A stretch of DNA of 64,000 bases from Octopus bimaculoides (Eukaryota). The notes under the pieces were generated by a model. That model searched no databases. It worked only from the letters and a program-made list of their open reading frames with translations, and had not been told where the DNA came from. The stretch is taken from positions 23,026,976 through 23,090,975 of the forward strand of contig NC_069006.1 of NCBI RefSeq assembly GCF_001194135.2. Reading direction: 5' to 3'. Both the position numbers and the translations under genes were made by a program. Below are positions 22,984 to 64,000 of the stretch, piece by piece (the stretch's first letter is position 1; each line of letters begins with the position of its first letter).

Positions 22984-23924
22984 AAATACACACACACACA
23001 CACTCCAACAGTTGACTAGTTACAGAAAACAGAAGCCCATGAGCTCAGCAACCCATAAATTCTAAACTACTCAGTTTATATTCAATCTTTGTTTTCTTTT
23101 TATTTATTCCTTAATTTTATCCCTAAAATTCATATTTACTCTATGTTTTTCTTTTTGCTTTTTTTTTTTTTACAGTTAAAACCATCATTTGATCGTCAAG
23201 ATTCTCATGGTATTGTTTTAACCAACCGTGCTATGTCTCGCAATGTTGTGGACGGTTTTAGGGTCAGTGCACGAAAGAAGGAAATCACATTTGATTCATT
23301 TGATGCTGTTCAACGAGAAAGAGAAAGCTTGTATTTTTCACTGCCACCAAAATTCAGAGGAGACAAGGTAAAAAATAACAGTAACAATAACACACAAACG
23401 CATACATTATATGATGGTTGTCCAATTATTCAAAGAATATGAATATTACTGGTGATTAGAAACTATATTCCACATGAAAATTTTGTTAAGAACAGTTTGC
23501 AGAATGCTGCAACAACTCATTACCAAAACCAAACAATCAAGAGACAAACTAAAGCAAGTCATTTGTCTCTGAAATGTCACTCAGTTTCATACCATAGTAA
23601 CCTTCAATTAAAGACATGGCTTTAATGAACGCTATAACGTGTCTTATACTATGTGCCCTACAACATGCAGACAACAGTTCGGAATTTCTAAGTATTCTTT
23701 TTGTCCTGCTGGATTACTGTTGCCAGTACCACCTGACTGGCCCTCGTGCCAGTGGCACGTAAAAGCACCCACTACACTCTTGGAGTGGTTGGCGTTAGGA
23801 AGGGCATCCAGCTGTAGAAACTCTGCCAGATCAGATTGGAGCCTGGTGCAGCCATCTGGCTTGCCAGTCCTCAGTCAAACTGTCCAACCCATGCCAGCAT
23901 GGAAAGCAGATGTTAAACGATGAT

Positions 23925-23970
<46 letters not shown>

Positions 23971-32200: not shown

Positions 32201-33244
32201 TGAAGATGCAGGCGAATATACGTGCACTGGGTCTGATCCTGGTGGCATTGTAACAGATACTGCTTTTATCACTGTCACATGTGAGTATTATGCCCTATGA
32301 ATCAGGATGATTTTTTTTTTTGTTGTTTTATATTGATCCTTCCTACTTAATGTATGTATAAATCAATATATACTGTCCATATTTTGTATGAAACATATCT
32401 CCTGATAACCTTACAAAAATTCTGCTAGACCAACTAAGATATACAAATTTAAATAGAAATCAGAAAAAAATTAATTTTCCTGCATCTTCTATCCTACATT
32501 AAATTGAATGCTAACCTTTTGATGGTAAGATTTTTAATGTGGAATTTTTGAAACAACTTATTCCAGCACAACCTTTAAAGTTCTTGGCTGAAACATTGTC
32601 ACTGTGAATGTTTGTATTTTTTTTTATAGTCAGGAGGAAAGGCGGTGCCTAATACCCTTTACAGAGCATCTAAGACTTTCTTGCATACTGAAATTATTAC
32701 TACATGAAGAGGTTGTGAAATGGCCATAATTCTATGCAAATTATGTGGTTAAATATACCTCCTGATTTTATGTTTATATATATACCTCCTGATTTTATGT
32801 TTATATATATATATCATCATCATCGTTTAACGTCCTCTTTCCATGCTAGCATGGGTTGGACGATTTGACTGAGGACTGGTGCAACCGGATGGCTACACCA
32901 GGCTCCAATCTAATTTGGCAGAGTTTCTACAGCTGGATGCCCTTCCTAATGCCAACCACTCAGAGAGTGTAGTGGGTGTTTTTACGTGTCACCCGCACGA
33001 AAACGGCCACGCTCGAAATGGTGTCTTTTATGTGCCACCCGCACAAGAGCCAGTCCAGGGGCACTGGCAACGATCTCGCTTGAAAACCCTACAAGGCCAG
33101 TCAGGCGGTACTGGCAACGGTCACGCTCAGGATGGTACATCTTATGTGCCACCCGCACAAGAGCCAGTCCAGGGGCACTGGCAACGATCTCACTTGGCTT
33201 GCCGGGTCTTCTCACGCACAGCACATTTCCAAAGGTCTCGGTCA

Positions 33245-45500: not shown

Positions 45501-47050
45501 CTTGAACTTAACAAATGGCACACTGTACGTCTGAAGAGAGACCGTAAGGAAGGTAAGCAGTAAACTCTTAATAGAATCTAATATTTCCAATTTGCTATTC
45601 AGAATTCCAAATATGTAGTCATGCATGATTGATTAGGCAATATTTGTTGCATGAATGAAACTATATATTTCCAGTAAACCAGCTAAATTGGTTCTGATTA
45701 ACACAGGTCATATGGTGAAATGAGTGAACCAAATTACTGTCTACTATATATTTGATCACTATAAACAAATCATCTGTACAGTTTGTTCAGAAAGAAATTG
45801 CAGAACTCTCGTCCATCATCCATGACAAGAGAGTCCATGATATATTTCTTCTACAATATATTCTGATTTTCTTTATATTTTTCTCCATTAGGTAAACTTA
45901 TTATTGATGGCCAACCTTTTGTTGGCACTGCACCAGGACCATTCCAGGGACTTGACCTCAACCAACCTTTGTACCTTGGAGGTTTACCTGACTTCAATGC
46001 CATTCCTCAGTCCGTTGGTTTTGACAGAGGATTTGTTGGTAAGTTCATTATATTATCATTATACCTTTTTGTTTTTTGTTTTTTTCCTGTATTCTAAAAT
46101 AACTGAAGTGTGATGAAAATGGGAAGGGTTGGGGAAAAAAAAACTTTGTGGTATTTAGTTAATCCTGAAATGAATCTGCAAGAGTCGGCTTTTCAATTTG
46201 TCCTTTCTGGGTTGATAAAATTCAGTGACAGTCAAATACTATTATTGATGCAATTGACTGTTCCTCTCCCTCCCTCCTTTGAAAAAAAGTGACTATAATG
46301 CTATAATGGTGATGATAATGACAGTGATGAGTGGAAGATATTGATGAAAATGATGAAGCAGAAGATGAAATGCTAATAATGGCCGTAATGTTGAGGAGGA
46401 AGAGGAGGACGATGGTGGCAACAACGATGATGATTGGCTGAAAAAGAGGAAGATGGTGAGAAAGTAACAGTGATGAAGACGTGATGATGGCAAAATTTCC
46501 AAGATTTTAATTTGTTTTTTTTTGTCTTTTTTATCCCATAGGTGGAGTGAGTCAAGTGGTAATTGGAGGCCAGGAATTGAACCTTGGAGGTGATGCAACT
46601 CAAGTGGTTGGCATCAGACAAGCAGATGTGTGCTCTGCGTCACCTTGTTTCAATGGTGGAACATGTGTTCCAAAGAATTCTGAATATGGTTTTGCTTGCT
46701 TCTGTCCACAGGGCTTTGCAGGTTACCAATGTGACACTGTTGGAGAACGTTGTTTCCCAGGTAAATTACATCAATTATTTCATTTCTTTTTTCTAGGTGC
46801 AATCCCATGGTCATTCGTGACTGAAAGGATTTTTACTTTACATGCTCTGAGTTCAGATTTCTCCATATTTGCACATCACCTTTGTAGAAACAATACAATT
46901 AATACTGGCAGTTTGGCAGTATACTTTAGTGAAACATTTTACCATCTGTGCTAAGTTACAATAGTAAAATTTGTATTTTAGTAAGGGACCAATATTTTTT
47001 TCTTCAAACAGTAAAACGTGTGTGAGAGAGAGAGAGAGAGAGAGTGTGTG

Positions 47051-47094
<44 letters not shown>

Positions 47095-47730
47095 NNNNNN
47101 NNNNNNNNNNNNNNNNNNNNNNNNNNNNNNNNNNNNNNNNNNNNNNNNNNNNNNNNNNNNNNNNNNNNNNNNNNNNNNNNNNNNNNNNNNNNNNNNNNNN
47201 NNNNNNNNNNNNNNNNNNNNNNNNNNNNNNNNNNNNNNNNNNNNNNNNNNNNNNNNNNNNNNNNNNNNNNNNNNNNNNNNNNNNNNNNNNNNNNNNNNNN
47301 NNNNNNNNNNNNNNNNNNNNNNNNNNNNNNNNNNNNNNNNNNNNNNNNNNNNNNNNNNNNNNNNNNNNNNNNNNNNNNNNNNNNNNNNNNNNNNNNNNNN
47401 NNNNNNNNNNNNNNNNNNNNNNNNNNNNNNNNNNNNNNNNNNNNNNNNNNNNNNNNNNNNNNNNNNNNNNNNNNNNNNNNNNNNNNNNNNNNNNNNNNNN
47501 NNNNNNNNNNNNNNNNNNNNNNNNNNNNNNNNNNNNNNNNNNNNNNNNNNNNNNNNNNNNNNNNNNNNNNNNNNNNNNNNNNNNNNNNNNNNNNNNNNNN
47601 NNNNNNNNNNNNNNNNNNNNNNNNNNNNNNNNNNNNNNNNNNNNNNNNNNNNNNNNNNNNNNNNNNNNNNNNNNNNNNNNNNNNNNNNNNNNNNNNNNNN
47701 NNNNNNNNNNNNNNNNNNNNNNNNNNNNNN

Positions 47731-47769
<39 letters not shown>

Positions 47770-48605
47770 ATTTAATATATTATGTAGATTGTAAATATAT
47801 ATATATGTAAACCTTTTTTCATGTTTGCTTTAATTCTGGCCTTATTACAAGCTTTCTTATTACCTCTTGAACTATATTTTTTTCTCTTCTCTAGTCTTAC
47901 TTTGTCTTATGCCAGAGCTTTAAATCACCCCAGCTTGTTTTCAATTATCTCCCTTTGATTCTATACCTCTTTTAAATCTTCAACTAGTGCTTTGTCTTGG
48001 TTTGATCTCATGACTGCTTATTAATTTTCAGGGCAATCTTTGCCTTCGTTTGATTAACTTTTCTCTATCATTTTTCATCTTGTTCATCCAATCCATCTGT
48101 TCAGCAATTATTAAGTGATATTTCTTTAAATCAACACGTTTCCCATCTCAAGTCATTACAAATTTCATCTTTTGTCACTGTTCGTTCATCTGTCCTCAGA
48201 ATCAATATTACTTGCCTTTCAGTGTGCACAAACATCTCTGTATTTTGTATCTTAGATGAAATAAAGATAAATGAATAAATGCCACTGTTTACAGTTTGTG
48301 TATATGATGAGATATATATAGCCTTGATCAATAGAACTATTTGGAAAACTTTTCATTCATTTCACCATCACCTCATTCATCATTATCGTCATATACCAAT
48401 TGCCACTTCTTTAACCTTTATAACACTGCCTTCTATTACAGTGATATTTTAGCTATAAGCTGCATGAAGTTAGCTTCCACCAGCCTTTTCTGTCCTTTTT
48501 TGGCCTTATTATAAAATATATATTTTTTAATATGTATAGAGATATATGTGTATATATATGCATATGGTGTGTGTGTGTGTGTGTGTGTGTCTGTGTGCAT
48601 GTGCA

Positions 48606-48651
<46 letters not shown>

Positions 48652-51210
48652 NNNNNNNNNNNNNNNNNNNNNNNNNNNNNNNNNNNNNNNNNNNNNNNNN
48701 NNNNNNNNNNNNNNNNNNNNNNNNNNNNNNNNNNNNNNNNNNNNNNNNNNNNNNNNNNNNNNNNNNNNNNNNNNNNNNNNNNNNNNNNNNNNNNNNNNNN
48801 NNNNNNNNNAACAATATGCAACTTGTTCCGCTGTCAGTCTCTTATCTTGCTTCATCCAAAACTGCGTGAGATGATATAACCTTCACTTGCAGTCACTAAC
48901 ACTTGCACTGAGTAACTCTATACAATACCTTCTATTACAGCTCTCCCTCTCTCCCTCTCTCTCTTCTCTCTCTCCCTCTCTCTCTCTCTTTCTCTCTCTC
49001 CCCCTCTCTCTCTCTCGCTCTCTCTTCTCTCTCTCATTTTCACACTTTCCTGCTGCGTTTCACCTCCAATGGTTGTTTTCCAGTTTTGCTAACTTTTTTT
49101 TTTTTCCTTTCTCGTGTTTGATTTGTTCCTTACCTTCCATCATTTCTTGAAGGAAGGATAACCAATTCATTGCACATAAATTTTAACAACAAAATCTTCT
49201 ATGGACACCAAAGGACAATGTGGACCCTGGCTGAGCACCACTGATTTACTTAATGCAAGCAACACTTTCAAAAAAGACTAATTTGGATGGTCACAGTTGG
49301 AATGCCTTTGATCTACTGGTCATATTAATTGACCTGAAACTAAACAACAATGGCTTGACTTAGATATAAAGTAGATTCTATTAAGGTTCATTCAACTAAT
49401 TATATTTCTTCCTACACAGAAATTAACTTTATTCATAATCAAAGGATATTAATTAGTAACATACTCAGTTTATACTTGTATATGGTAAGTGTATATACTT
49501 GCAACCCCTCAAGGAAATTCATGTCTTTAATCCTTTTAATTTCTTTATACAAATACAAACTATCAATTCTCAATAAAATTATTAAATACATTTTCTATTC
49601 TTCATTTCACCTCCACCCTTTCAACATTTTTCATTTATTTTTTCTTGACCCCTGCTTTTGTCACCTGAATATACATCAACCTCAGGAGTAACAGTGAAAG
49701 ACCCATTCTTCAACAAGACCTCCTACATTTCCTACCCAGCTATCAATGACGGCCACAAGGTTTTAACTATTGACATCCAAATTAAACCCCACACTCTGGA
49801 TGATGGTATCATTCTCTATGAAGGTCAGCAACAGAATGGAAATGGAGATTTTGTTGCCTTGCTTCTTAAAGATCATGGCTATCTGGAATTCCGATTTGAT
49901 GTTGGATCGGGTCAGTATTGGTTCCATTAAATTCCTTTGTTTGATTTCAGTGGTTTTTGTTGTTGTTGTTGTTTTTTTCTTTTTTTGTCTGTTTAAATTT
50001 GTGTGGTAAAAAGAAAATTTGTTTCTTACAAAATTTTAAAGAACTTTTTGTAAATCTTTCATTGATATGAAAATAAAATAAAATAAAATAAGAGTAGTTT
50101 TAAAGAAGCTTGAAACAATCTATTCTGTTGGTAACAAAGAGTTTCTTTGTTCCTGAAAAAAAAAACAGACAAAGATACATATGTGTGATACTTATGAAAG
50201 TCATGAGTATTGAATGTGAAAAATCTGTACAAGTATCTTCTATAATCACTGGCTAACTAAAGCCTTGTGAATGGATTTGGTAGATGGAAACTGAAAGAAG
50301 CCTGTCATATATAGATATATATGTGTATGTGTGTCTTTGTGTCTGTGTTTGTCCCCTGCCACCATGTGACAACCAGTGTTGGTGTATTTGTGTCCCCATA
50401 ACTTACCAGTTCAGCAAAGACACCGATAGAATAAGTACCAGACTTAAAATAAGTAAGTCCTAGGGTCAATTCATTTGACTAAAAATTCTTCAAGGCAGTG
50501 CCCCAGCATGGCTGCAGATAAATGAGTGAACCATGTAAAATATAAAAGACAACTGCTTAGTTGTCCTTCTGTGCCACATCAATAAATTTCTATTTTCTTT
50601 TCGTCTCTCACCAGGCCCTGCTATCATCAGAAGTGCCGAGCCTATCAAGGCCAATGAATGGGTTAATGTTAAACTTCATCGCAAGGACAATGTTGGTATG
50701 TTGCAAGTAGGTGATAGCGCACCAGTGGAAGGTAAATGCTGTTTTTTATACTTTCTATACACCATACATTAATGTATATGTATGTGTATATATATATATA
50801 TATATATATGCCTTGGTGTATATGTGTGCATCTGTATATATACATGAGTGTGTGTGTGTATGTGTGTGCGTGTAATTCAGTCTAAATGCATAAAACATTT
50901 CAAACACTTTTGCTACCTGTTTTGAATATGAACTTTAAAACATCCGTCCTTCATAATCCTGCACACATGCATATCTCTCAGTTCTGTTATGACTAGCTTT
51001 CACTACTGCCATCACCTTCTTCCTCAATCCCCACCACTCTGAACTAAATCAAGGGATTCTTGTGACAGGAAAACTAAAATTGCTGTGGGTTCTCATACCT
51101 TTCCAACACTGACAGCATACAATGATTTTGGAATTAATTGTCACATGTGCATGCATGCATACATACTTGTGTATATATGTAAATACATGCATACTTGTGT
51201 ATATATGTAA

Positions 51211-51246
<36 letters not shown>

Positions 51247-51434
51247 GGGAGAATATACAAATAATAACATCAGACGAGGACAGGTGGTGTAAATAACAAA
51301 AGGATATATTAGTATGACGCTCGGGAATACGGAAAGTCTTTGACGTTTCGAGCTACGCTCTTCAACAGAAAGAATACGGAGACAAGGAGAAAATCACGGA
51401 GAAAAAAAATTGAATAGTGTTAAGTCAACGGTCA

Positions 51435-51470
<36 letters not shown>

Positions 51471-52023
51471 TATATAAAGGGCATTATAATTAATTATATA
51501 TAATTAAATATATCTATGAAGAAACAATGAATTTTTTCATTACGAAATTTTTCGTTATTTTTTCATTATGAGGTTTTTTCACGCTGACTACTTGATAAAT
51601 TCTTATAAAGAATTTATCCTATATTATATTATATATATATATATATATACATATCAGGACAATTACCCCCCATAGGACAATTACCCTCCTTGGTTAATTA
51701 CCCCCTCTCCAATATATTAAGAAGTTTTTAATCATTCATCTGGTCCATCTAACAAGCTTCCTTCTACACACACAGTTTTGCTGTCCATCAAATTTCACCC
51801 ACTTAATCTACAATTAACCTTACCTTCTATGTTGGTACTATATTTTATGCAACAATCATTACAGAATTGAGAGAATATGTCTCCAGCGCAAGACACGGAT
51901 ATGTTAAAGATCTTAATAATGGCAAAAAACAGATCTCTGTGAAACTTTCAAAACTTCCAAGAATGACTTCCATCTATCTAGTTAACTTATTTTTTCTTGT
52001 TTTATTCTATAAACATACATACA

Positions 52024-52059
<36 letters not shown>

Positions 52060-53230
52060 TATATATATTAACCTGACCATCTGTTTGCATTAGAATAATA
52101 TTGGATTTCCTGTCAGGGTAACTGAATTGTTAGTCTTTTGTGTTTCACTAATAACTAATCTGTAGAGTTGTTAGAAAACTAAAGAAATTCGAATGAAGAA
52201 TGATATCAAAACTATAAATTTTGTATGTTTAAATAATTTTCTTTTCTTATGTAACCTATAATTCTTTTGATAATCAGTGAAATATAAATTGTTGGAAATG
52301 AGAAAAGAGAAGAAAAATACCATTTTTCTCTTTAAAAAAAATAAAAAAGTTGTTTTATACACTCTATTAATCAATTTTCTATTTTTCTACTCATTATCAA
52401 TTTATAGCTGAAATAGCTGTGAAAAATTATCAAAGTGGACCTTAAATGTGAAGCTGTGCACATGATATTCTCTCATTCCATTTACTTGATATTCTTTCAT
52501 TCCATTAATATGATATTCTCTCACTCCATTAACTTGATATTCTCTCATACCATTAACTTACTGTTCTATTGTATTCATTTCTTGCTCTCTCCTGTCACTT
52601 AAAAAACTTCTTTACTCTTAGTAATTTGTAACTCTTACTTGGCATAAATATAACAAATTCTTTAACTTATTATTGCTACCTTTGTCAAGGATCATGGATT
52701 GGCAGAATCAACAGAGCATTAGAGAGAATGCCTGGTGATATTTCATTGTTTTGCTACGCTGTGTTTTGAGCTAAAATCCCATGGAGCAATGGAGGAGGAT
52801 GGAGACAGTTTTATCTTTCTTCCTGTTCTCTGGGGTCAGTTTTTACCCTTCATTCTTCCAGTGTCAGGAGGATGAAAGTAGCAGTCAAATACCCAAAGTT
52901 AATTTAATCAACTTTACACTTTGTACCTATCAAGAAATCATTATCAGCACTGTCTCTGAGGTTTTGAATTTGTGCCATGTTCTTGGCACTAATCTCTGCC
53001 TATTCCCTTTAGATTCCTTTTCATTACTCTCAGCGCACACTTAAAGTCTCTTTACTGTTCTACCAGGTCAAATCAAAGAGCTTAGTTCTTTTACAGATGA
53101 AGACCAATATATTCATTCCTCTATAAAAAAAATTAAAAAAATTTGCTTTGTTCTGCTTAGTCAAAAAACAAAAAGAATTAAAATTATTATTTTCAATATT
53201 ACTTCTTTCTGATGAATTCAAGTTCTTGGA

Positions 53231-53261
<31 letters not shown>

Positions 53262-56200
53262 GTCATTTTCTTTATTGGGGAAGATGGTCCAGCTATTGAA
53301 AAAAATCTATTCCATTAACCAGTTTCACTTATTTCCCCACTCTTTGATCTAACCAACACCAGCTATACCAGATTTAATAATATTAAAAAAGAAAACACAA
53401 GGATTTTTTGTCTCTTTTCATGTTGTATGTATTCTTATGTTTATTGTTGATGTTGTTCCTCTTAGTTTAGCAACTTAATGAATGTGTATTTTGATTGATT
53501 AATTAATCAATTAACTTTTTTGACATGTATTTTGTAACGAAAATGAAAAACCAACCAATTTTTTTTATTAATCGTCTTTCTACTGAATTTCTTCTTTTGT
53601 CCCCCAGTGAGACCTGGGAACACAGAAATAGTCTTGTCTCGAGGAGGTATATATGCTTATCTTACCTGTCTCTAGCATCTTTGCTGAAGTGGTCAGGTGG
53701 ATTGGCACTTCTTTTCCAGAAGTCTTCTCCACCTTTTATTAACAATTTTTTTCTCCTTTTTTTTCTCGCTCTTTCTCTCTGTCTCTTTCTGTCTCTCTTT
53801 ATTTCTGCCCAAAACTCAATAGAACAAAGACAGAATTTCTAAAGATGCATTTTCTAAATAGTTAGAAGAAAATATTTGTTTAGAACACAATAAATCAGAA
53901 CATCTAACCCATGAATATGTTGATACAGTTATATATTAGGAAAGCTTTAGCTTTGGAGATTACAGATGATATAGAAACATCCTATTGTTCTCTTGAGTTA
54001 TTTTTCTGACAACTTAAACTTGAGAGAACAATAGGACATCTACATCATTTGTGGTCTCCACAGTTAATGCTTCCAAATAAATAATTGTAGTTATATCTAC
54101 ATTATACATGTTACAAGTATTCTAATATTTACATTAATAGTAATATCTGTAAAGATTTTGAAAAACCTTGCTCAGGCTTTCACATTAGAGAGGAACTTTT
54201 CAGCTTCTGGCCCATAGTCCTACGAGATATATGGAAGCTCCAGAAAGTGTTGACCAGACAAAATGTTTTAGTAGACAACTTAACAAACAGATTAAACACA
54301 GAAATTGATCAGTAAGTTAATGTTGACATATTTAATGAATGATGCATAAAAATAGCTAAGTAGAAATTAAAATGTGGGAGATAAACAAATCATAATTCTT
54401 CAGTGATTCCAATTTTGTTGAAATTGTGACACTCCACCAAAATATGTGGCCTTGTGCAAATGCGAGGAATCAGTATTGTTTTTCAACAAGCATGGGAGAT
54501 AACTACAAATATGTTTCAGTATTATTATGACTTCATTAGTGAAGCCTAATCTTCACCATGCTTGATGAAGTAGTGAATATACATATTGTGTATTCATTGA
54601 GTATAGGAAAATAGATTTGTTTAGAGGTTCAATAAGTCATTACTGCCTTGTACATAGAGCACAAGAGGTAAAATTAATGTTAACATATATGAAAATCATA
54701 TTAGTCAATGACTTATATTGTTTTCTTCTGTTTTTTTTTCTCATTGCGTATTTATTTTTGATAGTTTTACAATGTTTCCTGCTTTAAATGTATTAGCACT
54801 AATTTACTTATTGTTTTTTTTTATGTAGCTGACATCTGTGATTCAATTGAGTTGTTAACAAATTGTTTTACCTGTCTAATTCATTATACTATAATAACTG
54901 CAGCTACACTGCTTGTCAATTCAATTTCTAGGTTTAAACTCAGACAGGGAGTTGGATGACTTTTACATTCTTCATCGACTATAAATATTAGTTTCAATGA
55001 CTTTTCATAAAGGGAACATAGTATTAGTGAAGAAAAAAACTATTATAATATTACAAATGTAATAACATTTTTGATAATCAAATAGTTATCTGTTTATTTT
55101 GCCGTCTAAACCAAACTTAAATATCATTTCTAAATTCTTTGATTATTCAGTCATTGATTCTTTTGAGTTTTGGGAGAAATATCTAACACAAATTCTACTC
55201 AGCTTTTTATTTTTTATTTCATTTTTATTTATTTTTTTCATTATGATATTTTATTTACATTTTTATTTATTTTACTTTCTTTTTACAATTTATTTTAAAC
55301 ATACCCTCTGCCGGCCTTTTGTTGTCACACGAGAGTATGCACCAGTTTCAAAACCTTTTTCTCAGGCTTCACTTTGCTTCAATTTCTCCTGAATTTTACC
55401 CTTAATCGGGGCACTCTTTCAGCAATGAAACCAAACAGTTTTAATATCCTCTATATTTGATTCTTAATGTCCTATATATTTGATGAAAATATTTCTGTCA
55501 CATTTTGATATTGATCTTTTGAGAGTTAATACAATTGGGATCAGACATAGGTTTAATTGACTATTTCTCCATATTGTTCTTATTAATGACCTTTATATCA
55601 TCTAAGTAATTGTATGGTAGGAATAAACCAACTAGAGAATGACTTCGCATTTTATGTGTCTCTGGTACTAAAATATATCAGTACCAGCTATATACTGAAG
55701 TCGGCTCAGTTGTCTATATTTCCTACTCTGACAAAATTTGACCTGAATTGATTGCATACAGAATTCATTGTGTCTACACTCCAAGAGTTATCCTTGTTCT
55801 AATTCATCTTAATTCACCAGCCCACTCTCACTCTTTCACACATTGGCATGTTGTGTTTACCTCTTGCTTGTTAGCAATATGTCTTTAATGGCAGCTATTT
55901 TATTCCCCTTTCTCTTCTATCAAAACCTTGAAAATTTGCTGTCAGTTCTGATGTTCACCTCACTTCTAGCTAAGCCAGTTCTGTTATGCTCATTCCACTC
56001 TTTTCTAAAGCAAACATCCTGCTACTCTTCACAAGGTTACTCTCTATACTTACATCTGCACCTCACCTTTCTGCTTATTTTAACTTTGTCTTATTCTATC
56101 TGTATGCTGTAGATCACAACTCTATTATTAATTCCATACATGAGAAAATTAGCGTTGAAGACAAATATTTGATGTTAAAAGGGCCCAGTGAACAACAGAC

Positions 56201-59200
56201 CTCAAACAGTGCATTTTGGAAGGAATAGCAGTACTTTCCTGTCACCCACCTGTAACAACAGCTACTATATAATCATCAGTTCTTGTTTTCATCATCATTT
56301 TCGTCATCTTCATAACATGATTAACTTAATGTACTATTTATTGAGTATATTTTATTAATTACTTAGATGTTTCAGCCAAAGATTTGCCCAGGCCATGTCT
56401 AACTTAATATCACCACTTGATTAGAAATCAAATGTTTATAAGCTGCTAATAATTGTCATAGTGATCTCTACTCATGCAAATCAATGAAGAATGTACACTG
56501 AAACATGGTCTAGTCTTTTAAGATTTTCTTGTTTTCTGTGGAAAATACAATTAGTTTCCTACTCTTTGAGGTGACAGCTATTGACTTGTTCTTTATAAAA
56601 ATATTATTTAGAACAGAATATGATTGGCAAAATATGATTTAGAGTTGTTATCATGCTGCCAAGATCTTAGACATTCACCAACTGCATTGTCTACATTCTA
56701 TTTTTAATTAATTTTAATGAATTAAAATATTGAAGTTGTCTATTCTGCCTTCATTAACCACAATTAGTCATTATGCTAATGATTCTGTCCCTTCTCCATA
56801 TAGTTCACCGCATTATTTCTGTTATCACCAACTTTACTTAGATGTAGATACCAAAAATACCCAGATATCTTACAGTTCTAACTTCAGTGTCTTATTTCTA
56901 GTTTTGAATTTAAATCCTGCTACAATCTACTGAAAAATATCATTCATAAGTATTAGGGAAATAAATATCAACAGAAAAATATTTTTTTGGTTGTAAACCT
57001 AAACCTAATATTTAATTATTTAACTAACTACAAAATTAAGCAACCCACATCTTTTTAGGACAGTCACAAATTCCATCATAGATTTGCTACTGTTAAATTA
57101 ACACCATTCGAGTAGAGAAGCAGTAAATATCATAAGTGAAACATGAAAGTTTTGATCTCTTTGAAAATATTTCTTCTATTTTATCTTCCACTAAATATTA
57201 TCAAAGACATATTGCTGAAAGGTGCTGCTTTACCCTGGCTTTTCTTCTTGGAAAATAAATTCATCTGAAATATCATCTCTAGCAACCTTTTGCAATAATC
57301 TTTCCTAGTTTAAAACCTAATAGTCTGTTATACTTGTACCTTCAAAATTCCTGCTGCACTGTTCCAAACATGGCTACAAGTTAACAAAGTTCATTTTCTA
57401 ACGTGCAGTTAAACAGTAACACAGTGCAAGATTATTTCTGTCTGTAAAAGCCATATTACCCCGCCCAAACACTAACAGTGCAGGTAAAAATATGATGGAC
57501 AAATATAACAGACTTCAAGTTACACTCTGCTTCTGTTACATCCCATAATTCTCTTGACTTTTTTACACTTTCCACTGCATGAAAGTCACAATATTCTGCT
57601 TTCACCATCACCACCATCTTCACAAAATCCACCTTTTTGTTTTTACCATTAAATCGACCTTTTCATTCTTTATCTCTCTTTAGCCATGAATTCCTACAAT
57701 TATTATCATTGCACCTCACTTGCTGAATAATTTTTTGTGAATAAATGTATTAAAAATTCCATGGAAATATAAACTACTTTTATATACTTTATAAATTTCT
57801 AGGTTTAATTATCTCCCTTAAACAAGTTTCTCACTTTACCTCCCTTCACAATGCTTTTTCTTTGATAGGTTGGTACTCTGACTTGGTACTCTGNNNNNNN
57901 NNNNNNNNNNNNNNNNNNNNNNNNNNTATATATATATATATCTGTACTGAGCCTGTTTTCCTCTTGTTTGGAAATTCAGACATACATGCACACGCATATA
58001 TATATGCTCATACACTTCTTATCTTGTATATATTTCAGTTCATATTTCTTGGAATTTTTTTCTTTTTGCTTAATTTTCTTTTAATTAGATAAAAAAAATA
58101 AATAAATGTATACAATTATTGCTGACAATTCAAAGTAAATGCATGTATGGACATAGTTAAGTCAAAGATGTTCTAAGTATATTGCACGACATTCTTGAGA
58201 GCAGAATTTGCCTCCATCAGTATTACTACATATAACAAGCAGATAGTTGTAGTGATTTTAGTTATGGTACGTATTAGTTATAAAGGCCTTTGTAATGTGT
58301 AGAAATAGTCCTGTTGTTTGCTGCATGTATTAGTTTTTATATACTTAGAAAGAGTAATAGTAATTTCTTTTTGGGGTATCATTAAATAGTAAAGGTAAAA
58401 CTATATGGAATTAGTACATACCACTAGAACATAAATTAAATATAATCTATTTTATTCATGTATTTCTACTATATTACTAAATTAATTGCTCTACTCCACC
58501 ATCTCAAAAATATTTGCAAAAACCCATCACATAGAATAAAATATTTAATAATTTTCCCAATAACTGGCTGAGGAAAAAAAATAATGAATTAAATAGCTTA
58601 AAAAATTTAATAATAAATAATATATATATATAACTTGCTGGTACATATGATTAAATAGTGTGTTCCCTTCTAAAGAACACAAATCATTCTTGCCCCTGTT
58701 GATAACTTTTGAATTTATTATAGCACTTCTATTTAGTTGATTTTTTTCTTTTTTTAGAGGCTGTGCTCTCCTCCCTCTTAGGTATAGTGGACTCTGCTTC
58801 TGATTAAAATGTTGTCCTTGTGAGATCCCCCAAATGATTGTCTCAAACAGCTGAAACGTATTCAATTAAAAGCAGGATGGTCTAATGATATTGGACTTCT
58901 GTCTTGAAAGCTTGTAAGGTTTACATCCACTGCAAGCATTCCATTATCCTTCTAAATAAAATACTTCTTTATTCTACAACACCCTCCTCCATTTACCTGA
59001 CAGTGAAATCAAAGAAGGCCGTTATTCCTAATATTCACAAAAGATTCAATCTACAACATTGCATGAGTCCACATATGGATAAAGCCTCATTAATTGTATG
59101 CAGAAGTGCATAAAATATATAGACAACTCTCTTCATCTTATATCCTTTATGTAAAATATTTTATTTGGATAAAATATTAGTTTGTGAATTGGACTTTACA

Positions 59201-62200
59201 AATTTGTTACAAAAGTAATTTTTGAAGTTTCCAATAACAAGGTGCTTCCTTCTGTTGATTAACTAATGATTAGGGATATTGTTATGAGCTCCCCACAGCA
59301 GAAGAGACCCATACCTCACAGCAGATGCGTTAAAACTGATCCTTCTAGTGGTGTAAAGCACTCGCAGCAAAGCCACATAAAAGTGCCCTTGTGGTGCCAC
59401 TTAAAAGCACCTGTGTGGTGTCACATGAAAGCACCTGTGTCATGCTACATAAAAGTACCCATGTAGCCTCATGTAAAAGCATCTGTGCAGTGCCACATAA
59501 AAGCACCCAGCACTTTCTGTAAAGTGATTGGCATTAGGAAGGGCATCCAGCAGTTGAAACCATGCCAGATCAGACTGGAGTCTGATGCAGCCAGCTCTGG
59601 TCACACCATCCAACCCATGCCAGCATGGACAGTGGACATGTAAATGGTGATGATGTTTAACATTACATTTAGTGCTACTATATTTGATTAACTTAATAGT
59701 TCATTAATGAGTGATTTCAAATAGGCAGGAGAATATTTATAATAGTTTTAAAACAAAGTTCAGTTTTTATCTCTGTTAAATTTAGGGTTGGGTGGGATTA
59801 GATAGACAGAAAGGTAACCCATAGACAAATTTAACTTATAGGAACTCTGCTGGTATATAAATATGCTAAGTCAGCTCTTCTGTTTAAATAATAAACAAAC
59901 AGAAAATGAATATTATTAAATCATAAATGTAAGATGACTTAAAGAAGCAGATTAATTTAAGGAAAATAGATTAAAAAATTAAGTACAACAATGATAACAT
60001 TTGTTTTAATCTAAATTTCTGGAAGTTATATCAGGTAACAAATATTTAAGAAAAACCCAAAAGGAATTATCCCCTTTTTCTTTCATTTTATTTCTAGCCG
60101 CTGATGATGAATTGCCCCGCTTGCCAATAGGAAAGTGATATTTGTCATGCTTCTTACCATTTTGTTTTGCTTGTGTTGTGATGTGTTTTTGAGTGTTGTT
60201 TTTATTTTTATTTTGTTACTTTGTGATTCTATATTCTTTTACATTCTATTTTCTATGTTTATTTTTGTTCAGTGTTTCTTGAACAGATTGCTATGTTATC
60301 TGGAGTGTGCCTTGTAAATAAATAACCCTTTAGCATTCATGCCAGCCTAATCTATAATATTTAGTCAAACCAACCTAATCTGTAATTTTTAGTCAAACCA
60401 ACCTAATCTGTAATATTTTTTCAAACCAGCTCTACTCACCTTGTACTATGTTTTGTACTATGTTAACTTTACTCCTTGACAAAAAATCCCACTCTCAGTA
60501 AATTTTATAAAATGTCACACTTTTCTTTGTTTCATAATTTCCTTATGATTTCATTGACATATCTGAATGCTGAAGGGCTAAACAAACAAGTTGTGTAATG
60601 TGTTAAAACATAACCCAGTTTAATCTTCTTTGCTACTGTTTGTTGTTGTTGTTGTAACCATTTACCATTCAAACTGTCCAAATCTAGCATTTGTAAAATA
60701 TCACTCTATTTGTCTAAACTGAGAACTTTATGATATGTAGCTACTGGTAGCAGGAAAAGTTTCTACTGAATCACATTTTATCTTAGTCATATTGTTTCTT
60801 AGTTTAATATGTTGTTCATGAATGTTGATATTTCTAACACCATTAATACCATGAATGCTATTGGTTTAAACTATATATATATATATATATATATNNNNNN
60901 NNNNNNNNNNNNNNNNNNNNNNNNNNNNNNNNNNNNNNNNNNNNNNNNNNNNNNNNNNNNNNNNNNNNNNNNNNNNNNNNNNNNNNNNNNNNNNNNNNNT
61001 ATATATGATTTAAACAACTAGCTACAAATATTTTCCTAATTAATCTCTATTTTTTCCCTTAAAATTAACCATACAAAGCATTATTATTTAAAAGATTAAA
61101 GCATTTAAACATGAACTGCATTAAACATACCATGTTGGTAAATAAATGTTAACAATGAAAACGAGGAATTAATGAAATTTTTTTCTTCTTAATTTGAAGT
61201 TCTAAAAGAATTTGTTTTAACTTGTTTTAAAATTAATTAAATATAAATTATTTATTTTTTCAAACTAAACTTATAAACTAATATTTCATATATTAAAATA
61301 AGAAAATGCACCTTGAAGTGAAGAAGGAAAATTAATTAGCAGAGGAAAAGTTCTTGCATATTTTGTTGTTTCTTTGAATCAATAATTTTTATTTTTGTTA
61401 TTCTTTCTTCTGATTAATTAACTAATTTTTAATTATATAATACAACTATACAGAATAAATAACCAACAGAGAATATAAATAAATATAATATATTTTTAAT
61501 TATTGCTGTAAAGTAATTTTGGAGTTTAAAACCCGTAATACTTGAAGAGAGATAAGATATGAATCTAAATATCTATCTTTAGATTGATTTCAGTCTAACA
61601 AGAAAGTTTGTAATTTTGGCAATTCAAAGATGCTGATTCACTATTATGTTGGATATTGTGATTTTTCAGTTGCCATGCACAAGCTTTCTTTCTCACTCTT
61701 ACATTCCACCTCTCTTTTACATATACTTGTAGTTTTAATTTCAAATTTACCTTACAGCAGAACTAAATGTGTTTTCACAAACAGAATTAACCTGAATTTT
61801 TTAATATAAAACCATAGGAAATACATCAAAATTTCCTAAAATTAACAACTGGGGAAAATTTTAACCTTGAATGACCAAAATGTCTGTGTTTAATATTTTG
61901 TTTCTCTTTTTGTCTACAACTTGTGTGAAATAACCATTTATATTTCTTTTTCTTCTCCTTTTATGTTGTCTTTCTCATGCTACATTGTCTTCTAATTGTT
62001 GGTCTGTTTCTCCTTCTATCTCTAGCTAGCATGTGGGTCTTCAAAACATATGGTTTTGACAACTAACTTGTGGTCGCCCATTCCTTCTTTATCTTACAAA
62101 TTTAAATATATAGATCATTCAAATAAATATTTTAACTGTTACACCACCACAAAACCTTTTCCCTCCAAATTATCAACTTCTTCCAAATTCTACCAAAAGC

Positions 62201-63731
62201 AACTTTGTCATTCAGCCTTCTGAAGGTGATAAACTGAAGTATAAGTCAAGCACTGAGGATGATTTTATCATCTGAAAATCTCCTAAAATTCATGACCTTA
62301 TGTGTATGTTAGCATGTCACACAAAATGCTCAACAGCATTTCCTCTGGCTCTTTATGTCCTAAGCTCAAATTCAGTTGAGGTCAACTTTACTCTTCCTGC
62401 CCCTAGGGTCAATCAAATAAGAAGCAGTTGAGCACTGGGGTCGACGTAATCAGCTTATATCATCCTTTGAAATTTTTGTCCTTGTGCCAAAATTTGGTTA
62501 AGTGTGGCCTGTAATTAAACAACAGCAATAGCAGCAACACCACCAATTTCAGTGTCAGTTTTATTATTGGTGTCTTTGTATCCATTTGGTTGTCCAAAAT
62601 TGTCACAAGCTCATGTTGGACATTATAAACATAATGATGTAAAAACAGAAGACTATTTTTATTTTTGTTTTCAGTTTAGTAAGAGAAGGAGAAGGAGACA
62701 GTGTTTGCAAGAGAGATCAACCATCTTGAATTTTAACAAACTAACTCAATTGTCTAATATCCTTCGACTACACACATACACAGAGGCAGTTTTTCCCCTA
62801 GAATGACCTTAACTGCAGTGGCTAAAACAAATAAATCACACACAAACATCCACATGCATGCACACATACACAAATTTCTGAATTTTTTTGCTTTTTATCA
62901 TTTTGTATTCTTTTTCCCCCTGTTGATGGGGCAGGTGGGGGCAGGGTTTAAGGACAAGATTGTGCATTTCTTTGTTGTCTTTTTTGTTTGTTCTTTGTCT
63001 TTGTTTTGGTTTCTTAGAATTTCCTGATTACTTTCTTCTTTTTATTTATTCCTCTTTGCTTATTTTATTTCTTTTCTTTTCTTTTTTTTTATTTCAAAGG
63101 AATGTCACTAATATTCATTTAACAAAATAAACTATCTTACAAAAATACATACATTGGTATATCTTTCACTTCTTTCTCTTTATCTATCTACCTATCTATC
63201 AATATTTGTTTATATATATGTATATTATATATATATATAAATGTGTGTGTATTTGTATAATATGTATATGCCACAAAAGTTTTGATTGTGGATATCAAAA
63301 GATATTGTACTTACGTAATATAATTTTGAAGTAACACTCACACACACATATATATATATAGAAGGTATGATACAAACTATTGGTTATGCATGGGTTTTTT
63401 CATGTTATATGTTCTTGAAGAAACAATTTTCATATCAGTACATATTTACTCGAAATATAAACTTATAAATGTAATTCTTTATTATAAAATAAATTACGGA
63501 TGATTACATTTGTAATTTTCATAGTGAGGAAATATGTGCAGGCCTGGAGCTTGTTTTCTGAAGGTCAGAAACATGGAATAACCCATTTGTATTCAATAGT
63601 TTGTACTACTATANNNNNNNNNNNNNNNNNNNNNNNNNNNNNNNNNNNNNNNNNNNNNNNNNNNNNNNNNNNNNNNNNNNNNNNNNNNNNNNNNNNNNNN
63701 NNNNNNNNNNNNNNNNNNNNNNNNNNNNNNN

Positions 63732-63765
<34 letters not shown>

Positions 63766-64000
63766 TTATATACATATATATTCACATTCATACCCACATA
63801 TACACACACTCACACATGTACACATAGATATATACATATACATTGGTATATGTGTGTTTGCGTTAATATAAATCTATATAAACATGTGTAATTCTTTATC
63901 TTCTTAATAGATTCTTCACCTGGAAGCCGAGTTGGCTTAAACCTGCGCCAGCCTCTGTACTTGGGTGGAATTGACCCACAATACAAAGTTGCTGATGGTA
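118..64000 (+). CDS. HSPG2: Perlecan (basement membrane heparan sulfate proteoglycan core protein), multi-exon, partial at both ends; 69 exons traced
   Basis: Spliced translation gives Ig x4, LDLa x3, Ig, 3x(laminin-B + laminin-EGF), Ig x12, LG1, EGF, LG2; the LDLa-to-LG2 part of this order is diagnostic of perlecan. All introns are GT-AG with compatible phases. No start or stop codon in the window. Confidence 0.96.
496..565. repeat. Perfect 35-bp tandem duplication
   Basis: TATTGGTCAGCATGAGGTTATGGTAGAAGACAAAT x2. Confidence 0.9.
1378..2507 (+). CDS. HSPG2: Perlecan N-terminal Ig domain b (exons 1378-1502, 2363-2507)
   Basis: [22 protein letters not shown]|[29 protein letters not shown]; 125+145 nt. 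Confidence 0.9.
2098..2263 (-). mobile_element. Fragment of dispersed repeat family A (SINE/LINE 3' tail family)
   Basis: CAGCTGGATGCCCTTCCTAATGCCAACCACTC..TTTTACGTGCCAC; matches copies at 17783, 23719, 32815 and 59372. Ends approximate. Confidence 0.75.
3418..4043 (+). CDS. HSPG2: Perlecan N-terminal Ig domain c (exons 3418-3542, 3899-4043)
   Basis: [22 protein letters not shown]|[29 protein letters not shown]; 125+145 nt. Confidence 0.88.
4496..5761 (+). CDS. HSPG2: Perlecan N-terminal Ig domain d (exons 4496-4620, 5617-5761)
   Basis: [22 protein letters not shown]|[29 protein letters not shown]; 125+145 nt. Confidence 0.9.
5021..5190 (+). mobile_element. tRNA-derived SINE-like repeat, family B
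   Basis: GGCTGTGTGGTTGAG..GGTTCAGTCCC head, then GATGGAAACTGAAAGAAG; similar to 16946-17252 and 50250-50535. Ends approximate. Confidence 0.7.
6316..7345 (+). CDS. HSPG2: Perlecan domain II: three LDL-receptor class A repeats (exons 6316-6456, 6547-6666, 7214-7345)
   Basis: [35 protein letters not shown]; [35 protein letters not shown]; [36 protein letters not shown]. Six Cys and the DxSDE motif in each; all phase 1-1. Confidence 0.95.
7508..7727. mobile_element. piggyBac-like MITE
   Basis: TTAA at 7504-7507 and 7728-7731 flank inverted termini TCCTTTAGCATT / AATGCTAAAGGG. Confidence 0.7.
8429..8716 (+). CDS. HSPG2: Perlecan domain II Ig domain (single exon)
   Basis: [44 protein letters not shown]; the WRLNWG motif is typical of this perlecan Ig. 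Confidence 0.95.
9238..11840 (+). CDS. HSPG2: Perlecan domain III-1 laminin-B (IV type A) domain (exons 9238-9362, 9464-9643, 10117-10209, 10676-10759, 11065-11207, 11732-11840)
   Basis: [29 protein letters not shown]|[46 protein letters not shown]. Confidence 0.94.
10270..10520 (+). mobile_element. tRNA-derived SINE-like repeat, family C
   Basis: GAGTTCAAATTCTGCCGAGGTCAACTTTGCCTTTCATCCTTTC..AAGTACCAG core; further copies near 18700-19110, 21655-22025, 24620-24775, 52700-52990 and 62330-62495. Ends approximate. Confidence 0.7.
12108..14589 (+). CDS. HSPG2: Perlecan domain III laminin-EGF repeats, block 1 (exons 12108-12218, 12578-12699, 13099-13247, 13900-13967, 14449-14589)
   Basis: [21 protein letters not shown]|[25 protein letters not shown]|FTKKC..|[23 protein letters not shown]. 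Confidence 0.94.
14244..14295. repeat. (ATT)n microsatellite
   Basis: Long uninterrupted ATT run; one of many (AT)n, (CA)n, (CT)n and (ATT)n intronic microsatellites, several beside N gaps. Confidence 0.9.
14962..18604 (+). CDS. HSPG2: Perlecan domain III-2 laminin-B domain (exons 14962-15144, 15796-15888, 16555-16638, 17453-17571, 18496-18604)
   Basis: [13 protein letters not shown]|[48 protein letters not shown]. Confidence 0.94.
16946..17252 (+). mobile_element. tRNA-derived SINE-like repeat, family B
   Basis: GGGTTCAGTCCCACTG..ACCTTGGGCAAGTGTCTTCTAC..GAAACTGAAAGAAGCC..AAGTACCAG. Ends approximate. Confidence 0.72.
17783..18082 (+). mobile_element. Young copy of repeat family A ending in (GAT)n
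   Basis: GGCGTTAGGAAGGGCATCCAGCTGTAGAAACTCTGCC..CCAACCCATGCTAGCATGGAAAGCGGACGTTAAACGACGATGATGATG. Confidence 0.8.
19175..22311 (+). CDS. HSPG2: Perlecan domain III laminin-EGF repeats, block 2 (exons 19175-19288, 19515-19642, 20833-20919, 21042-21100, 21445-21527, 22171-22311)
   Basis: [27 protein letters not shown]|[20 protein letters not shown]..|[17 protein letters not shown]. Confidence 0.94.
20111..20617. mobile_element. 212-bp Penelope-like terminal-repeat fragment present twice (20111-20322, 20406-20617) on either side of an N gap
   Basis: The two copies look identical; a third copy lies at about 51246-51439; a hammerhead-like motif is on the minus strand. Confidence 0.6.
23176..25621 (+). 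CDS. HSPG2: Perlecan domain III-3 laminin-B domain (exons 23176-23367, 24167-24262, 24826-24909, 25391-25621)
   Basis: [13 protein letters not shown]|[47 protein letters not shown]. Confidence 0.94.
23719..23923 (+). mobile_element. Repeat family A copy
   Basis: GGCACGTAAAAGCACCCACTACAC..GGAAAGCAGATGTTAAACGATGAT. Confidence 0.78.
25818..30067 (+). CDS. HSPG2: Perlecan domain III laminin-EGF repeats, block 3 (exons 25818-25934, 26441-26568, 28799-28885, 30006-30067)
   Basis: [21 protein letters not shown]|[31 protein letters not shown]|FSPTC..|[11 protein letters not shown]. Confidence 0.93.
27158..27509 (+). mobile_element. HINE/Helentron-like non-autonomous element
   Basis: 5' subTIR ACCTCTGCC (27162-27170), 3' subTIR GGCGGAGGT (27477-27485), then terminal hairpin GCGCTC-TCT-GAGTGC (27488-27502) and a T-rich end. 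Confidence 0.65.
30407..32280 (+). CDS. HSPG2: Perlecan domain IV Ig1 (exon 30407-30679) and Ig2 (exons 31189-31292, 32109-32280)
   Basis: [21 protein letters not shown]; VQMECTVVG..|[15 protein letters not shown]. Confidence 0.93.
32815..33243 (-). mobile_element. Young repeat family A copy with internal duplication
   Basis: Reverse complement of 17783-18082; the segment TTATGTGCCACCCGCACAAGAGCCAGTCCAGGGGCACTGGCAACGATCTC occurs twice. Confidence 0.8.
33357..34964 (+). CDS. HSPG2: Perlecan domain IV Ig3 (exon 33357-33614) and Ig4 (exons 33779-33922, 34827-34964)
   Basis: [32 protein letters not shown]; [22 protein letters not shown]. Confidence 0.92.
34194..34424. mobile_element. Fold-back (palindromic) MITE-like element
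   Basis: Arms of about 105 bp are near reverse complements around a short AT spacer. Confidence 0.8.
34991..35047 (+). mobile_element. 5'-truncated 3' tail of repeat family A
   Basis: GTCAAATCGTCCAACCCATGCTAGCATGGAAAGCGGACGTTAAACGATGATGATG. Confidence 0.8.
35172..37126 (+). CDS. HSPG2: Perlecan domain IV Ig5 (exons 35172-35320, 35772-35889) and Ig6 (exons 36072-36195, 36972-37126)
   Basis: [18 protein letters not shown]..|[11 protein letters not shown]; [19 protein letters not shown]|..[11 protein letters not shown]. Confidence 0.93.
38014..40600 (+). CDS. HSPG2: Perlecan domain IV Ig7 (exon 38014-38280), Ig8 (exons 38750-38839, 39600-39779), Ig9 (exon 40340-40600)
   Basis: [24 protein letters not shown]; VIVKCESQ|..[15 protein letters not shown]; [21 protein letters not shown]. 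Confidence 0.92.
40850..44094 (+). CDS. HSPG2: Perlecan domain IV Ig10 (exons 40850-41012, 41506-41603), Ig11 (42268-42354, 42506-42688), Ig12 (43136-43268, 43967-44094)
   Basis: [26 protein letters not shown]; VEFDCIVST|..IQWSK..DAGTYKC; [25 protein letters not shown]. Confidence 0.92.
42424..42502. repeat. (CAT)/(TAT)n microsatellite abutting the acceptor of exon 42506
   Basis: The repeat runs directly into ttcag (AG at 42504-42505). Confidence 0.88.
44919..46760 (+). CDS. HSPG2: Perlecan domain V LG1, EGF1 and start of EGF2 (exons 44919-45032, 45373-45552, 45892-46038, 46542-46760)
   Basis: [85 protein letters not shown]1 fits the C2-xxxx-T-C3 O-fucose consensus. Confidence 0.94.
49686..50731 (+). 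CDS. HSPG2: Perlecan domain V LG2, first part (exons 49686-49910, 50615-50731)
   Basis: [44 protein letters not shown]|[18 protein letters not shown]; ends in phase 1. Confidence 0.94.
51246..51439. mobile_element. Third copy of the Penelope-like fragment, embedded in (TA)n
   Basis: Near-identical to 20111-20322 and flanked by (TA)n on both sides. Confidence 0.65.
52462..52560. repeat. Minisatellite, unit of about 24-25 bp, x4
   Basis: TGATATTCTCTCATTCCATTAACT-like units. Confidence 0.8.
53608..53646 (+). CDS. HSPG2: Candidate alternative 39-nt microexon in LG2, (V)[12 protein letters not shown]
   Basis: Acceptor ttcttcttttgtcccccag, donor GAG|gtatat, 39 nt, phase 1-1, no stop, more GC-rich than its flanks. 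No transcript evidence available. Confidence 0.55.
57451..57483 (+). CDS. HSPG2: Candidate alternative 33-nt microexon in LG2, (A)[10 protein letters not shown]
   Basis: Acceptor ttatttctgtctgtaaaag, donor CAG|gtaaaa, phase 1-1, open frame. Confidence 0.3.
58758..58781 (+). CDS. HSPG2: Candidate alternative 24-nt microexon in LG2, (E)AVLSSLL
   Basis: Very strong acceptor tttttttctttttttag, donor TAG|gtatag, phase 1-1, open frame. Confidence 0.4.
   Translation, partial: RLCSPPS
59372..59655 (+). mobile_element. Diverged repeat family A copy with an internal tandem array of about 24 nt
   Basis: About six GCCACATAAAAGCACC-like units (59372-59508) precede GGCATTAGGAAGGGCATCCAG..CCAACCCATGCCAGCATGG..TGATGATG. 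Confidence 0.72.
60098..60138 (+). CDS. HSPG2: Candidate alternative exon in LG2, (A)[12 protein letters not shown]; 3' boundary ambiguous
   Basis: Very strong acceptor cccctttttctttcattttatttctag followed by a GC-rich, codon-like segment in phase 1. Confidence 0.4.
60326..60577. mobile_element. piggyBac-like MITE (same terminus type as 7508-7727)
   Basis: Termini CCCTTTAGCATTCA / TGAATGCTGAAGGG; degenerate TTAA-like flanks; internal 30-bp duplication. Confidence 0.6.
63911..64000 (+). CDS. HSPG2: Perlecan domain V LG2 continuation (exon truncated by window end)
   Basis: Acceptor ttcttaatag at 63910; phase 1 gives (D)[29 protein letters not shown], continuing LG2 in frame. Confidence 0.92.

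Follow-up and report, generated by a model that had tools for sequence, protein, structure and literature searches.

A 13-kb intron in the LG2 loop of octopus perlecan lies at a position that holds a predicted cassette exon in other lophotrochozoans

Agrin and neurexin adjust their contacts at synapses and in the matrix through splice inserts in loops of their laminin G (LG) domains. The neurexin splice site 4 (SS4) insert is about 30 residues long, with known regulation and ligand effects. The agrin A/y insert KSRK has been placed in the J-K loop, beside the calcium site, where it creates a site for heparin and makes the binding of alpha-dystroglycan weaker (PMC6450144). Perlecan, the third major dystroglycan partner, is likewise encoded by extensively alternatively spliced genes, including unc-52 in Caenorhabditis elegans and trol in Drosophila, the latter with 25 predicted variants (PMC10761121, PMC10328508). 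In the papers searched, we found no comparable switch for perlecan and no described perlecan splicing in the LG2 J-K loop, unc-52 and trol included. The unc-52 splicing events fall in the Ig region. Here we analysed a stretch of 64,000 nucleotides (nt) of Octopus bimaculoides DNA (contig NC_069006.1 of assembly GCF_001194135.2, positions 23,026,976 to 23,090,975, forward strand; hereafter the window), which carries a perlecan gene with a very long intron, 50732-63910, in the second LG domain (LG2). Judged from alignments and gene models, this intron is the octopus copy of a lophotrochozoan phase-1 intron that forms a conserved slot for one cassette exon.

The + strand of the window encodes a perlecan-type protein. 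The spliced window peptides gave Pfam matches to Ldl_recept_a (three), Laminin_B, Ig/I-set, Laminin_G (two) and EGF, in the domain order of perlecan (LDLa, Ig, repeats of Laminin B with laminin EGF, an Ig array and an LG/EGF C-terminus). The nearest named homologues were perlecans of molluscs and a nemertean. We built the gene model from 66 coding seeds, picking donor and acceptor independently for each neighbouring pair; the best donor and acceptor were frame-compatible in 58 of the 65 seed pairs, against a chance expectation of one third. Splice sites were scored with donor and acceptor matrices trained on 58 introns of this gene, for which the leave-one-out 5th, 10th, 25th and 50th percentiles were 4.4, 5.7, 7.9 and 9.1 for donors and 1.3, 4.1, 5.8 and 9.3 for acceptors. 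A codon-usage score trained on 49 exons was added to the splice scores to give a total for each candidate exon. The long intron and its flanking exons were as follows.

50615-50731, + strand: LG2 exon, encoding 38 residues and ending in the G that opens a split codon; donor AAG/gtaaat, score 7.5.
50732-63910, + strand: phase-1 intron in the LG2 J-K loop, AAG/gtaaat...aatag/ATT; 13,179 nt as assembled.
63911-64000, + strand: opening part of the following LG2 exon, (G)AT TCT..., encoding 30 residues; acceptor score 4.0; cut by the window end.

The upstream exon ends ...GTGGAAG/gtaaat and the downstream exon opens aatag/ATTCTTCA, so that the split codon G/AT encodes D and the intron is in phase 1 on both sides. 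Its 13,179 nt comprise 12,923 read bases and 256 N and amount to 26 times the gene's median intron length. The next-longest inter-exon intervals in our gene model of the window were 2,925 and 2,230 nt, with a median of 509 nt. When the exons were joined from 50731 to 63911, the LG domain aligned without gaps to the insert-free mouse agrin LG2 (3pve), and the direct junction encodes a loop of canonical length. That the flanking exons belong together in this order is supported by their matching phases, by the gapless agrin LG2 alignment and by introns of identical position and phase in three further species. A first-pass annotation made from the letters of the window had assigned the gene to perlecan and had singled out this intron as by far the longest in the window; both the assignment and the intron borders were confirmed.

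The intron falls in the loop that receives the agrin A/y insert KSRK and the neurexin SS4 insert. In the agrin alignment, human 8s9p, which carries KSRK, reads GESPKSRKVPHT where mouse LG2 3pve, which lacks it, reads GESPVPHT, and the octopus VE/DSSPGSRV is in register with both. This puts KSRK 4 residues past the site that corresponds to the octopus intron. For neurexin structures with the SS4 insert, the alignment breaks at YPAG/RQLT, about 5 residues past the equivalent of the octopus intron. The loop had been identified correctly by the first-pass annotation. Intron position and phase differed between agrin and perlecan. In mouse-like Agrn genomic DNA, the upstream exon ends GESP/gtgagt in phase 0 and the next exon starts VPHT; the y exon AAATCCCGCAAG (11425-11436, 12 nt) lies 212 nt downstream of the GESP exon. 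This Agrn sequence came from a contig of JGI metagenome 3300051405 (L007, 10001-11700) and is presumably host-derived. Identity of the perlecan slot with the agrin y intron was refuted: the agrin intron is in phase 0 and lies 11 nt further downstream, whereas that of perlecan is in phase 1. By alignment, then, the perlecan and agrin slots are in the same loop but are different introns.

The perlecan slot resembles agrin A/y in lying in the J-K loop of a homologous LG domain and, in the gene models of Bulinus, Elysia and Tubulanus, in holding a short frame-preserving exon between two introns. In contrast to these, the agrin exon is 12 nt long and in phase 0-0, the insert sequences are unrelated, and alternative use is proven for agrin, whereas the perlecan slot is known from gene models and sequence. 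Neurexin SS4 (in LNS6) shares the loop by alignment but belongs to a different gene family. The two LG domains encoded in the window also differ from each other in intron positions: LG1 (45552/45892) is split at RKEG/KLIIDG, before strand J, and LG2 is split at DVGSG/PAIIR (49910/50615) and again after strand J (50731/63911).

With the spliced LG2 as query, an exhaustive HMMER search returned 1,296 matches, from which we fetched 153 proteins and compared 148 LG segments. The octopus spacing from EFRFD.GSG to LYLGG was found exactly in 114 of the 148. Among named perlecans, loops with at least 8 extra residues occurred in the snails Bulinus truncatus (+22) and Elysia (about +27), the scallop Ylistrum (+28) and the nemertean Tubulanus (+8). 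The Biomphalaria perlecan model also had an insert at the site, two further proteins had 6 and 10 additional residues, and a Ciona agrin had 4. MAFFT placed every perlecan insert exactly at the octopus exon junction, and all five lophotrochozoan perlecans compared had an insert there (gene models KAH9504451.1 for Bulinus, GFR68365.1 for Elysia, XP_074655738.1 for Tubulanus, XP_060073482.1 for Ylistrum and A0A2C9KC15 for Biomphalaria). In three of these species, the genomic sequence placed the insert in an exon of its own.

Bulinus (L004), 20310-20372: cassette of 63 nt, attag/AACAAG...CAGAG/gtatat, encoding (E)QVAANDEQVYAHLARGDVVR; introns of 1,548 and 1,631 nt.
Elysia (L005), 23902-23970: cassette of 69 nt; upstream exon ends GLLIVNNEEPVT plus G; introns of 3,354 and 2,342 nt.
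Tubulanus (L006), 21794-21817: cassette of 24 nt; upstream exon ends GMLTVDAGMTVK plus G; introns of 627 and 1,349 nt.

In all three species, as in octopus exon 50615-50731, 12 residues separate G-M/L-L from the end of the upstream exon, which is in phase 1; that of Bulinus ends ...NNDEPIN plus G, followed by gtgagg. The octopus exon from 63911 aligns to GSTPSNKTVGLNL of Bulinus exon D. Each intron holds one cassette, and each cassette has AG/GT borders, a length divisible by three, phase 1-1 and a terminal G. Inclusion lengthens the loop by 8-23 residues, and skipping would be predicted to keep the frame and leave a loop of near-canonical length. Scored with the octopus matrices, the cassettes of Bulinus, Elysia and Tubulanus had acceptors of 3.7, 0.5 and 12.9, donors of 6.2, 7.7 and 6.0, and totals of 18.2, 13.0 and 19.6, respectively. 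Intron position, phase 1 and orthologous flanking exons are thus identical between octopus and these gene models, which differ in that they have a 24-69-nt exon within introns totalling 2.0-5.8 kb, whereas the octopus intron spans 13 kb without a recognisable counterpart.

The suggestion that the perlecan LG2 loop receives a splice insert was therefore partly vindicated by this conserved lophotrochozoan slot for one small cassette exon: two gastropods and a nemertean have a cassette in their orthologous introns, while identity with the agrin y insert and the proposed octopus series of microexons did not hold. The J-K loop was encoded without an intron in a crab and in two contigs (L003, Logan ERR13935157; L010, JGI 3300018414), both of which encode a perlecan-like LG1-EGF-EGF-LG2 arrangement with LG2 in one uninterrupted frame.

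Within the octopus intron, the first-pass annotation had listed several short segments as candidate microexons. These segments exist as listed, and we scored them together with one from our own scan.

53608-53646, + strand: leading frame-preserving candidate for a cassette; 39 nt, in phase 1-1, ending in G; unverified.
53676-53696, + strand: candidate of 21 nt; donor CAG/gtggat 0.9, below every real donor; codon score -0.50.
56113-56187, + strand: open phase-1 pseudo-exon of 75 nt from our own scan; acceptor 5.7, donor 5.5, codon score -0.33.
57451-57483, + strand: candidate of 33 nt (11 residues); acceptor aaaag/ -0.2 (2nd percentile), donor 8.6; unverified.
58758-58781, + strand: candidate of 24 nt; acceptor 11.7, donor TAG/gtatag -3.0, codon score -0.32.
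60098-60134, + strand: candidate of 37 nt; acceptor 12.9 (78th percentile), donor AAA/gtgata 1.6, codon score 0.70 per codon.
62675-62700, + strand: proposed partner of 60098-60134, 26 nt; acceptor 7.9, donor ACA/gtgttt -1.8, codon score 0.77.

Of the candidates named by the first-pass annotation, only 53608-53646 had both splice sites in the range of the gene's real sites (acceptor 3.9, 10th percentile; donor GAG/gtatata 6.2, 14th percentile). With a codon score of 0.41 per codon its total was 15.1, within the range of the three annotated cassettes (13.0-19.6), and its splice-site scores were close to those of the Bulinus cassette. Every other candidate of that annotation had a site no better than the 2nd percentile of the gene's real ones. 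We judged 53676-53696 and 58758-58781 to be chance pseudo-exons, and 56113-56187 illustrates the chance background; 57451-57483 had a codon score of 0.23 and a total of 10.7. Only 29 nt separate 53608-53646 from 53676-53696, whereas the smallest real intron in the window measures 90 nt, so these two segments are not separate exons of one transcript.

We then compared the number of candidates with chance expectation, counting open, frame-preserving phase-1 segments in the intron. At the loosest thresholds, which admit all the listed candidates, there were 54 on the sense strand and 46 on the antisense strand. Other introns gave 58 per 13 kb and Markov resamples 53.1±9.0. With thresholds set at the 5th percentile, the counts were 2, 1 and 4.4±2.4 for sense, antisense and Markov resamples, respectively. 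The microexon series thus showed no excess over chance in either number or quality, and the candidates as a set are chance pseudo-exons, not a combinatorial code. The first-pass annotation had itself cautioned that AT-rich DNA yields such segments by chance. For annotation, splice-compatible open segments listed from AT-rich introns have essentially no evidential value by themselves.

Microexons of the SRRM4/eMIC type are very short exons that combine a strong donor with a UGC-containing enhancer near the acceptor. The octopus candidates did not show this combination. Most of their donors were weak, and an upstream TGC was present only at -22 for 53676 and at -26 for 57451; there was none within 40 nt upstream of 53608, 58758, 60098, 62675 or the three annotated cassettes. 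Rbfox GCATG and UGC motifs showed no consistent pattern around the candidates or cassettes.

The intron also contains three assembly gaps.

57894-57926, no strand: assembly gap of 33 N inside the intron; a (TA)n run follows.
60895-60999, no strand: assembly gap of 105 N inside the intron, flanked by (TA)n at either end.
63614-63731, no strand: assembly gap of 118 N, ending 180 nt upstream of the acceptor; an (AT)n run follows.

All three lie within intron 50732-63910 and touch no exon, so they affect only its estimated length and possible hidden content, not the reading frame. An expected second EGF module had no match in the sequenced DNA of 46761-49685, between the exon ending at 46760 and the exon starting at 49686 (VTVKDPFF). 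The missing constitutive EGF exon is probably hidden in gap 47095-47730 or 48652-48809. Its absence from the sequenced DNA indicates that gaps of this assembly can hide exons.

Whether the octopus intron retains one cassette, with 53608-53646 as the best candidate or with the exon in one of the three gaps, we consider evenly poised. That 53608-53646 itself is the octopus cassette is possible but on the unlikely side. It was the top frame-preserving phase-1 candidate, and real control sequence would be expected to yield only 0.07 candidates as good in every 12.9 kb. Its inclusion would add 13 residues and, on joining to 63911, would create an RGD with the next exon (...LSRGDSSPG). An RGD is also encoded by the Bulinus cassette (HLARGDVVR) and is absent from the Elysia, Tubulanus, Ylistrum and Biomphalaria inserts; its occurrence in both the octopus candidate and the Bulinus cassette may be coincidence.

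Several findings weigh against a retained cassette. A candidate as good as 53608-53646 appeared in 21-29% of Markov resamples (P = 0.21-0.29). No octopus candidate resembled the known, fast-evolving cassettes above chance, and a motif scan found the AN..(F/V)(Y/E) motif common to those cassettes to be absent from the octopus intron. The Bulinus, Elysia and Tubulanus cassettes are predictions of annotation pipelines, and the protein models of these other species bear no isoform labels. In Biomphalaria, the cassette would measure 35 nt, compared with 63 nt in Bulinus, and the model reads on into the intron, which suggests that the exon can decay. Across the cassette donor, the Biomphalaria glabrata protein (P0126) reads ..QLYE/gtatatggtcca, homologous to Bulinus ..VVRG/gtatatagtcca (20310-20390). 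This read-through points to a decayed or frame-shifting exon or to a faulty gene model.

Searching the intron with the known inserts, by tblastn and by Smith-Waterman comparison of 305 open segments with 7,485 controls, gave no above-chance signal. The resemblance of RPNTNS in 57451-57483 to QPDANS of Elysia was not above chance. A protein search with the spliced junction peptide gave three matches, none of them a cephalopod transcript, and a mollusc LG2 profile search, aimed at isoforms that differ in the insert, yielded nothing but short proteins from other taxa, all insert-free. A relative with about 83% intron identity is present as contigs of about 1 kb; concatenated open reading frames (ORFs) around all candidates (1,437 aa), searched for this relative's intron pieces, returned nothing.

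The alternative that survives best is a plain long intron: the ancestral cassette would have been lost in cephalopods, the LG2 loop would always be short, and all candidates would be chance pseudo-exons in AT-rich DNA. We regard this as a serious possibility, somewhat short of an even chance. It accords with chance-level candidate counts at every threshold, with a best candidate that is unremarkable against the Markov nulls, with the lack of homology to known cassettes and with the microsatellites and dispersed repeats in the intron. The canonical spacing is, moreover, the majority state of LG domains. It does not account as readily for the insert at this site in every lophotrochozoan perlecan compared, for the agreement of 53608-53646 with real cassettes in phase, in a 3n length that ends in G and in the strength of its splice sites, or for an intron 26 times the gene median.

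A second alternative is that 60098-60134 is a real 37-nt exon. Included alone, it would shift the frame, the phase-1 reading giving 13 residues and then a stop, and would produce a truncated transcript or one targeted by nonsense-mediated decay; included with 62675-62700 (37 + 26 = 63 nt, the size of the Bulinus cassette), it would restore the frame and add 21 residues. Its total of 22.3 was the top combined score in the intron, above the antisense maximum of 20.3. Its acceptor is strong, and both segments have high codon scores. The encoded peptide starts AADDE, against planorbid AANDE, but this similarity was weak (tblastn E = 10-31; shuffle p = 0.023 before multiple-test correction). Both donors lack G at -1 and at +5, whereas none of the gene's 64 reliable donors lacks both. 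62675-62700 is unlikely as a partner exon, the pairing proposed by the first-pass annotation is not upheld, and we consider this alternative very improbable.

The combinatorial, possibly neuronal, use of several alternative microexons (53608, 53676, 57451, 58758, and 60098 with 62675), as originally proposed, is the least probable reading of all. It has the correct loop, the great length of the intron and one good splice site in each of some candidates in its favour, but the candidates are not in excess over antisense, other-intron or resampled sequence, four of the five have a splice site at or below the 2nd percentile, the first two are too closely spaced, the orthologous introns hold a single cassette and no UGC or GCATG pattern is shared.

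The intron interrupts the perlecan LG2 J-K loop on the rim beside the calcium and ligand site. If the octopus intron does retain one cassette, its inclusion would alter the shape and charge of the loop that in agrin modulates heparin and alpha-dystroglycan binding. A regulated LG2 J-K cassette in the perlecan of octopus and other lophotrochozoans would be an independent counterpart of agrin A/y and neurexin SS4, switching the binding of domain V to alpha-dystroglycan, heparin or integrins; we put this forward tentatively and consider it unlikely. Use of such a cassette could be tissue-specific. The fixed position of the cassette in snails and a nemertean, together with the insert in a scallop protein, suggests that evolution has turned to this loop more than once for a binding surface that can be adjusted. 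For annotation, a very long intron at this site deserves a check for a small exon.

We also surveyed the remaining content of the intron. It contained no ORF reaching 125 aa and no recognisable nested gene, and an Rfam scan gave microsatellite matches only, all of them sub-threshold. No duplicated copy of either flanking exon, which would be a sign of mutually exclusive exons, was found. Extension of the flanking exons by another donor or acceptor was rejected: read-through meets a stop after 13 codons, with only a poor donor on offer. The sense strand of the intron carried fewer donor-like GT sites than its antisense strand, both at scores of at least 4.4 (34 vs 55) and at scores of at least -3 (280 vs 380), a pattern that selection against cryptic 5' splice sites would produce.

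The octopus intron probably grew to about 13 kb through the accumulation of microsatellites and short repeats. Two dispersed repeats were recognised within it.

51242-51440, + strand: dispersed repeat of 199 nt, 97.5% identical to 20113-20311 and 20408-20606.
59488-59655, + strand: repeat resembling a short interspersed nuclear element (SINE); other parts of the window hold at least five diverged copies, on both strands.

The two other copies of the 199-nt repeat directly flank gap 20323-20405, an arrangement that suggests a tandem copy or an assembly artefact. Copies of the SINE-like repeat include 17902-18079, 23750-23906 and 32815-32992, and a 24-nt tandem array (59372-59508) adjoins the intron copy on its upstream side.

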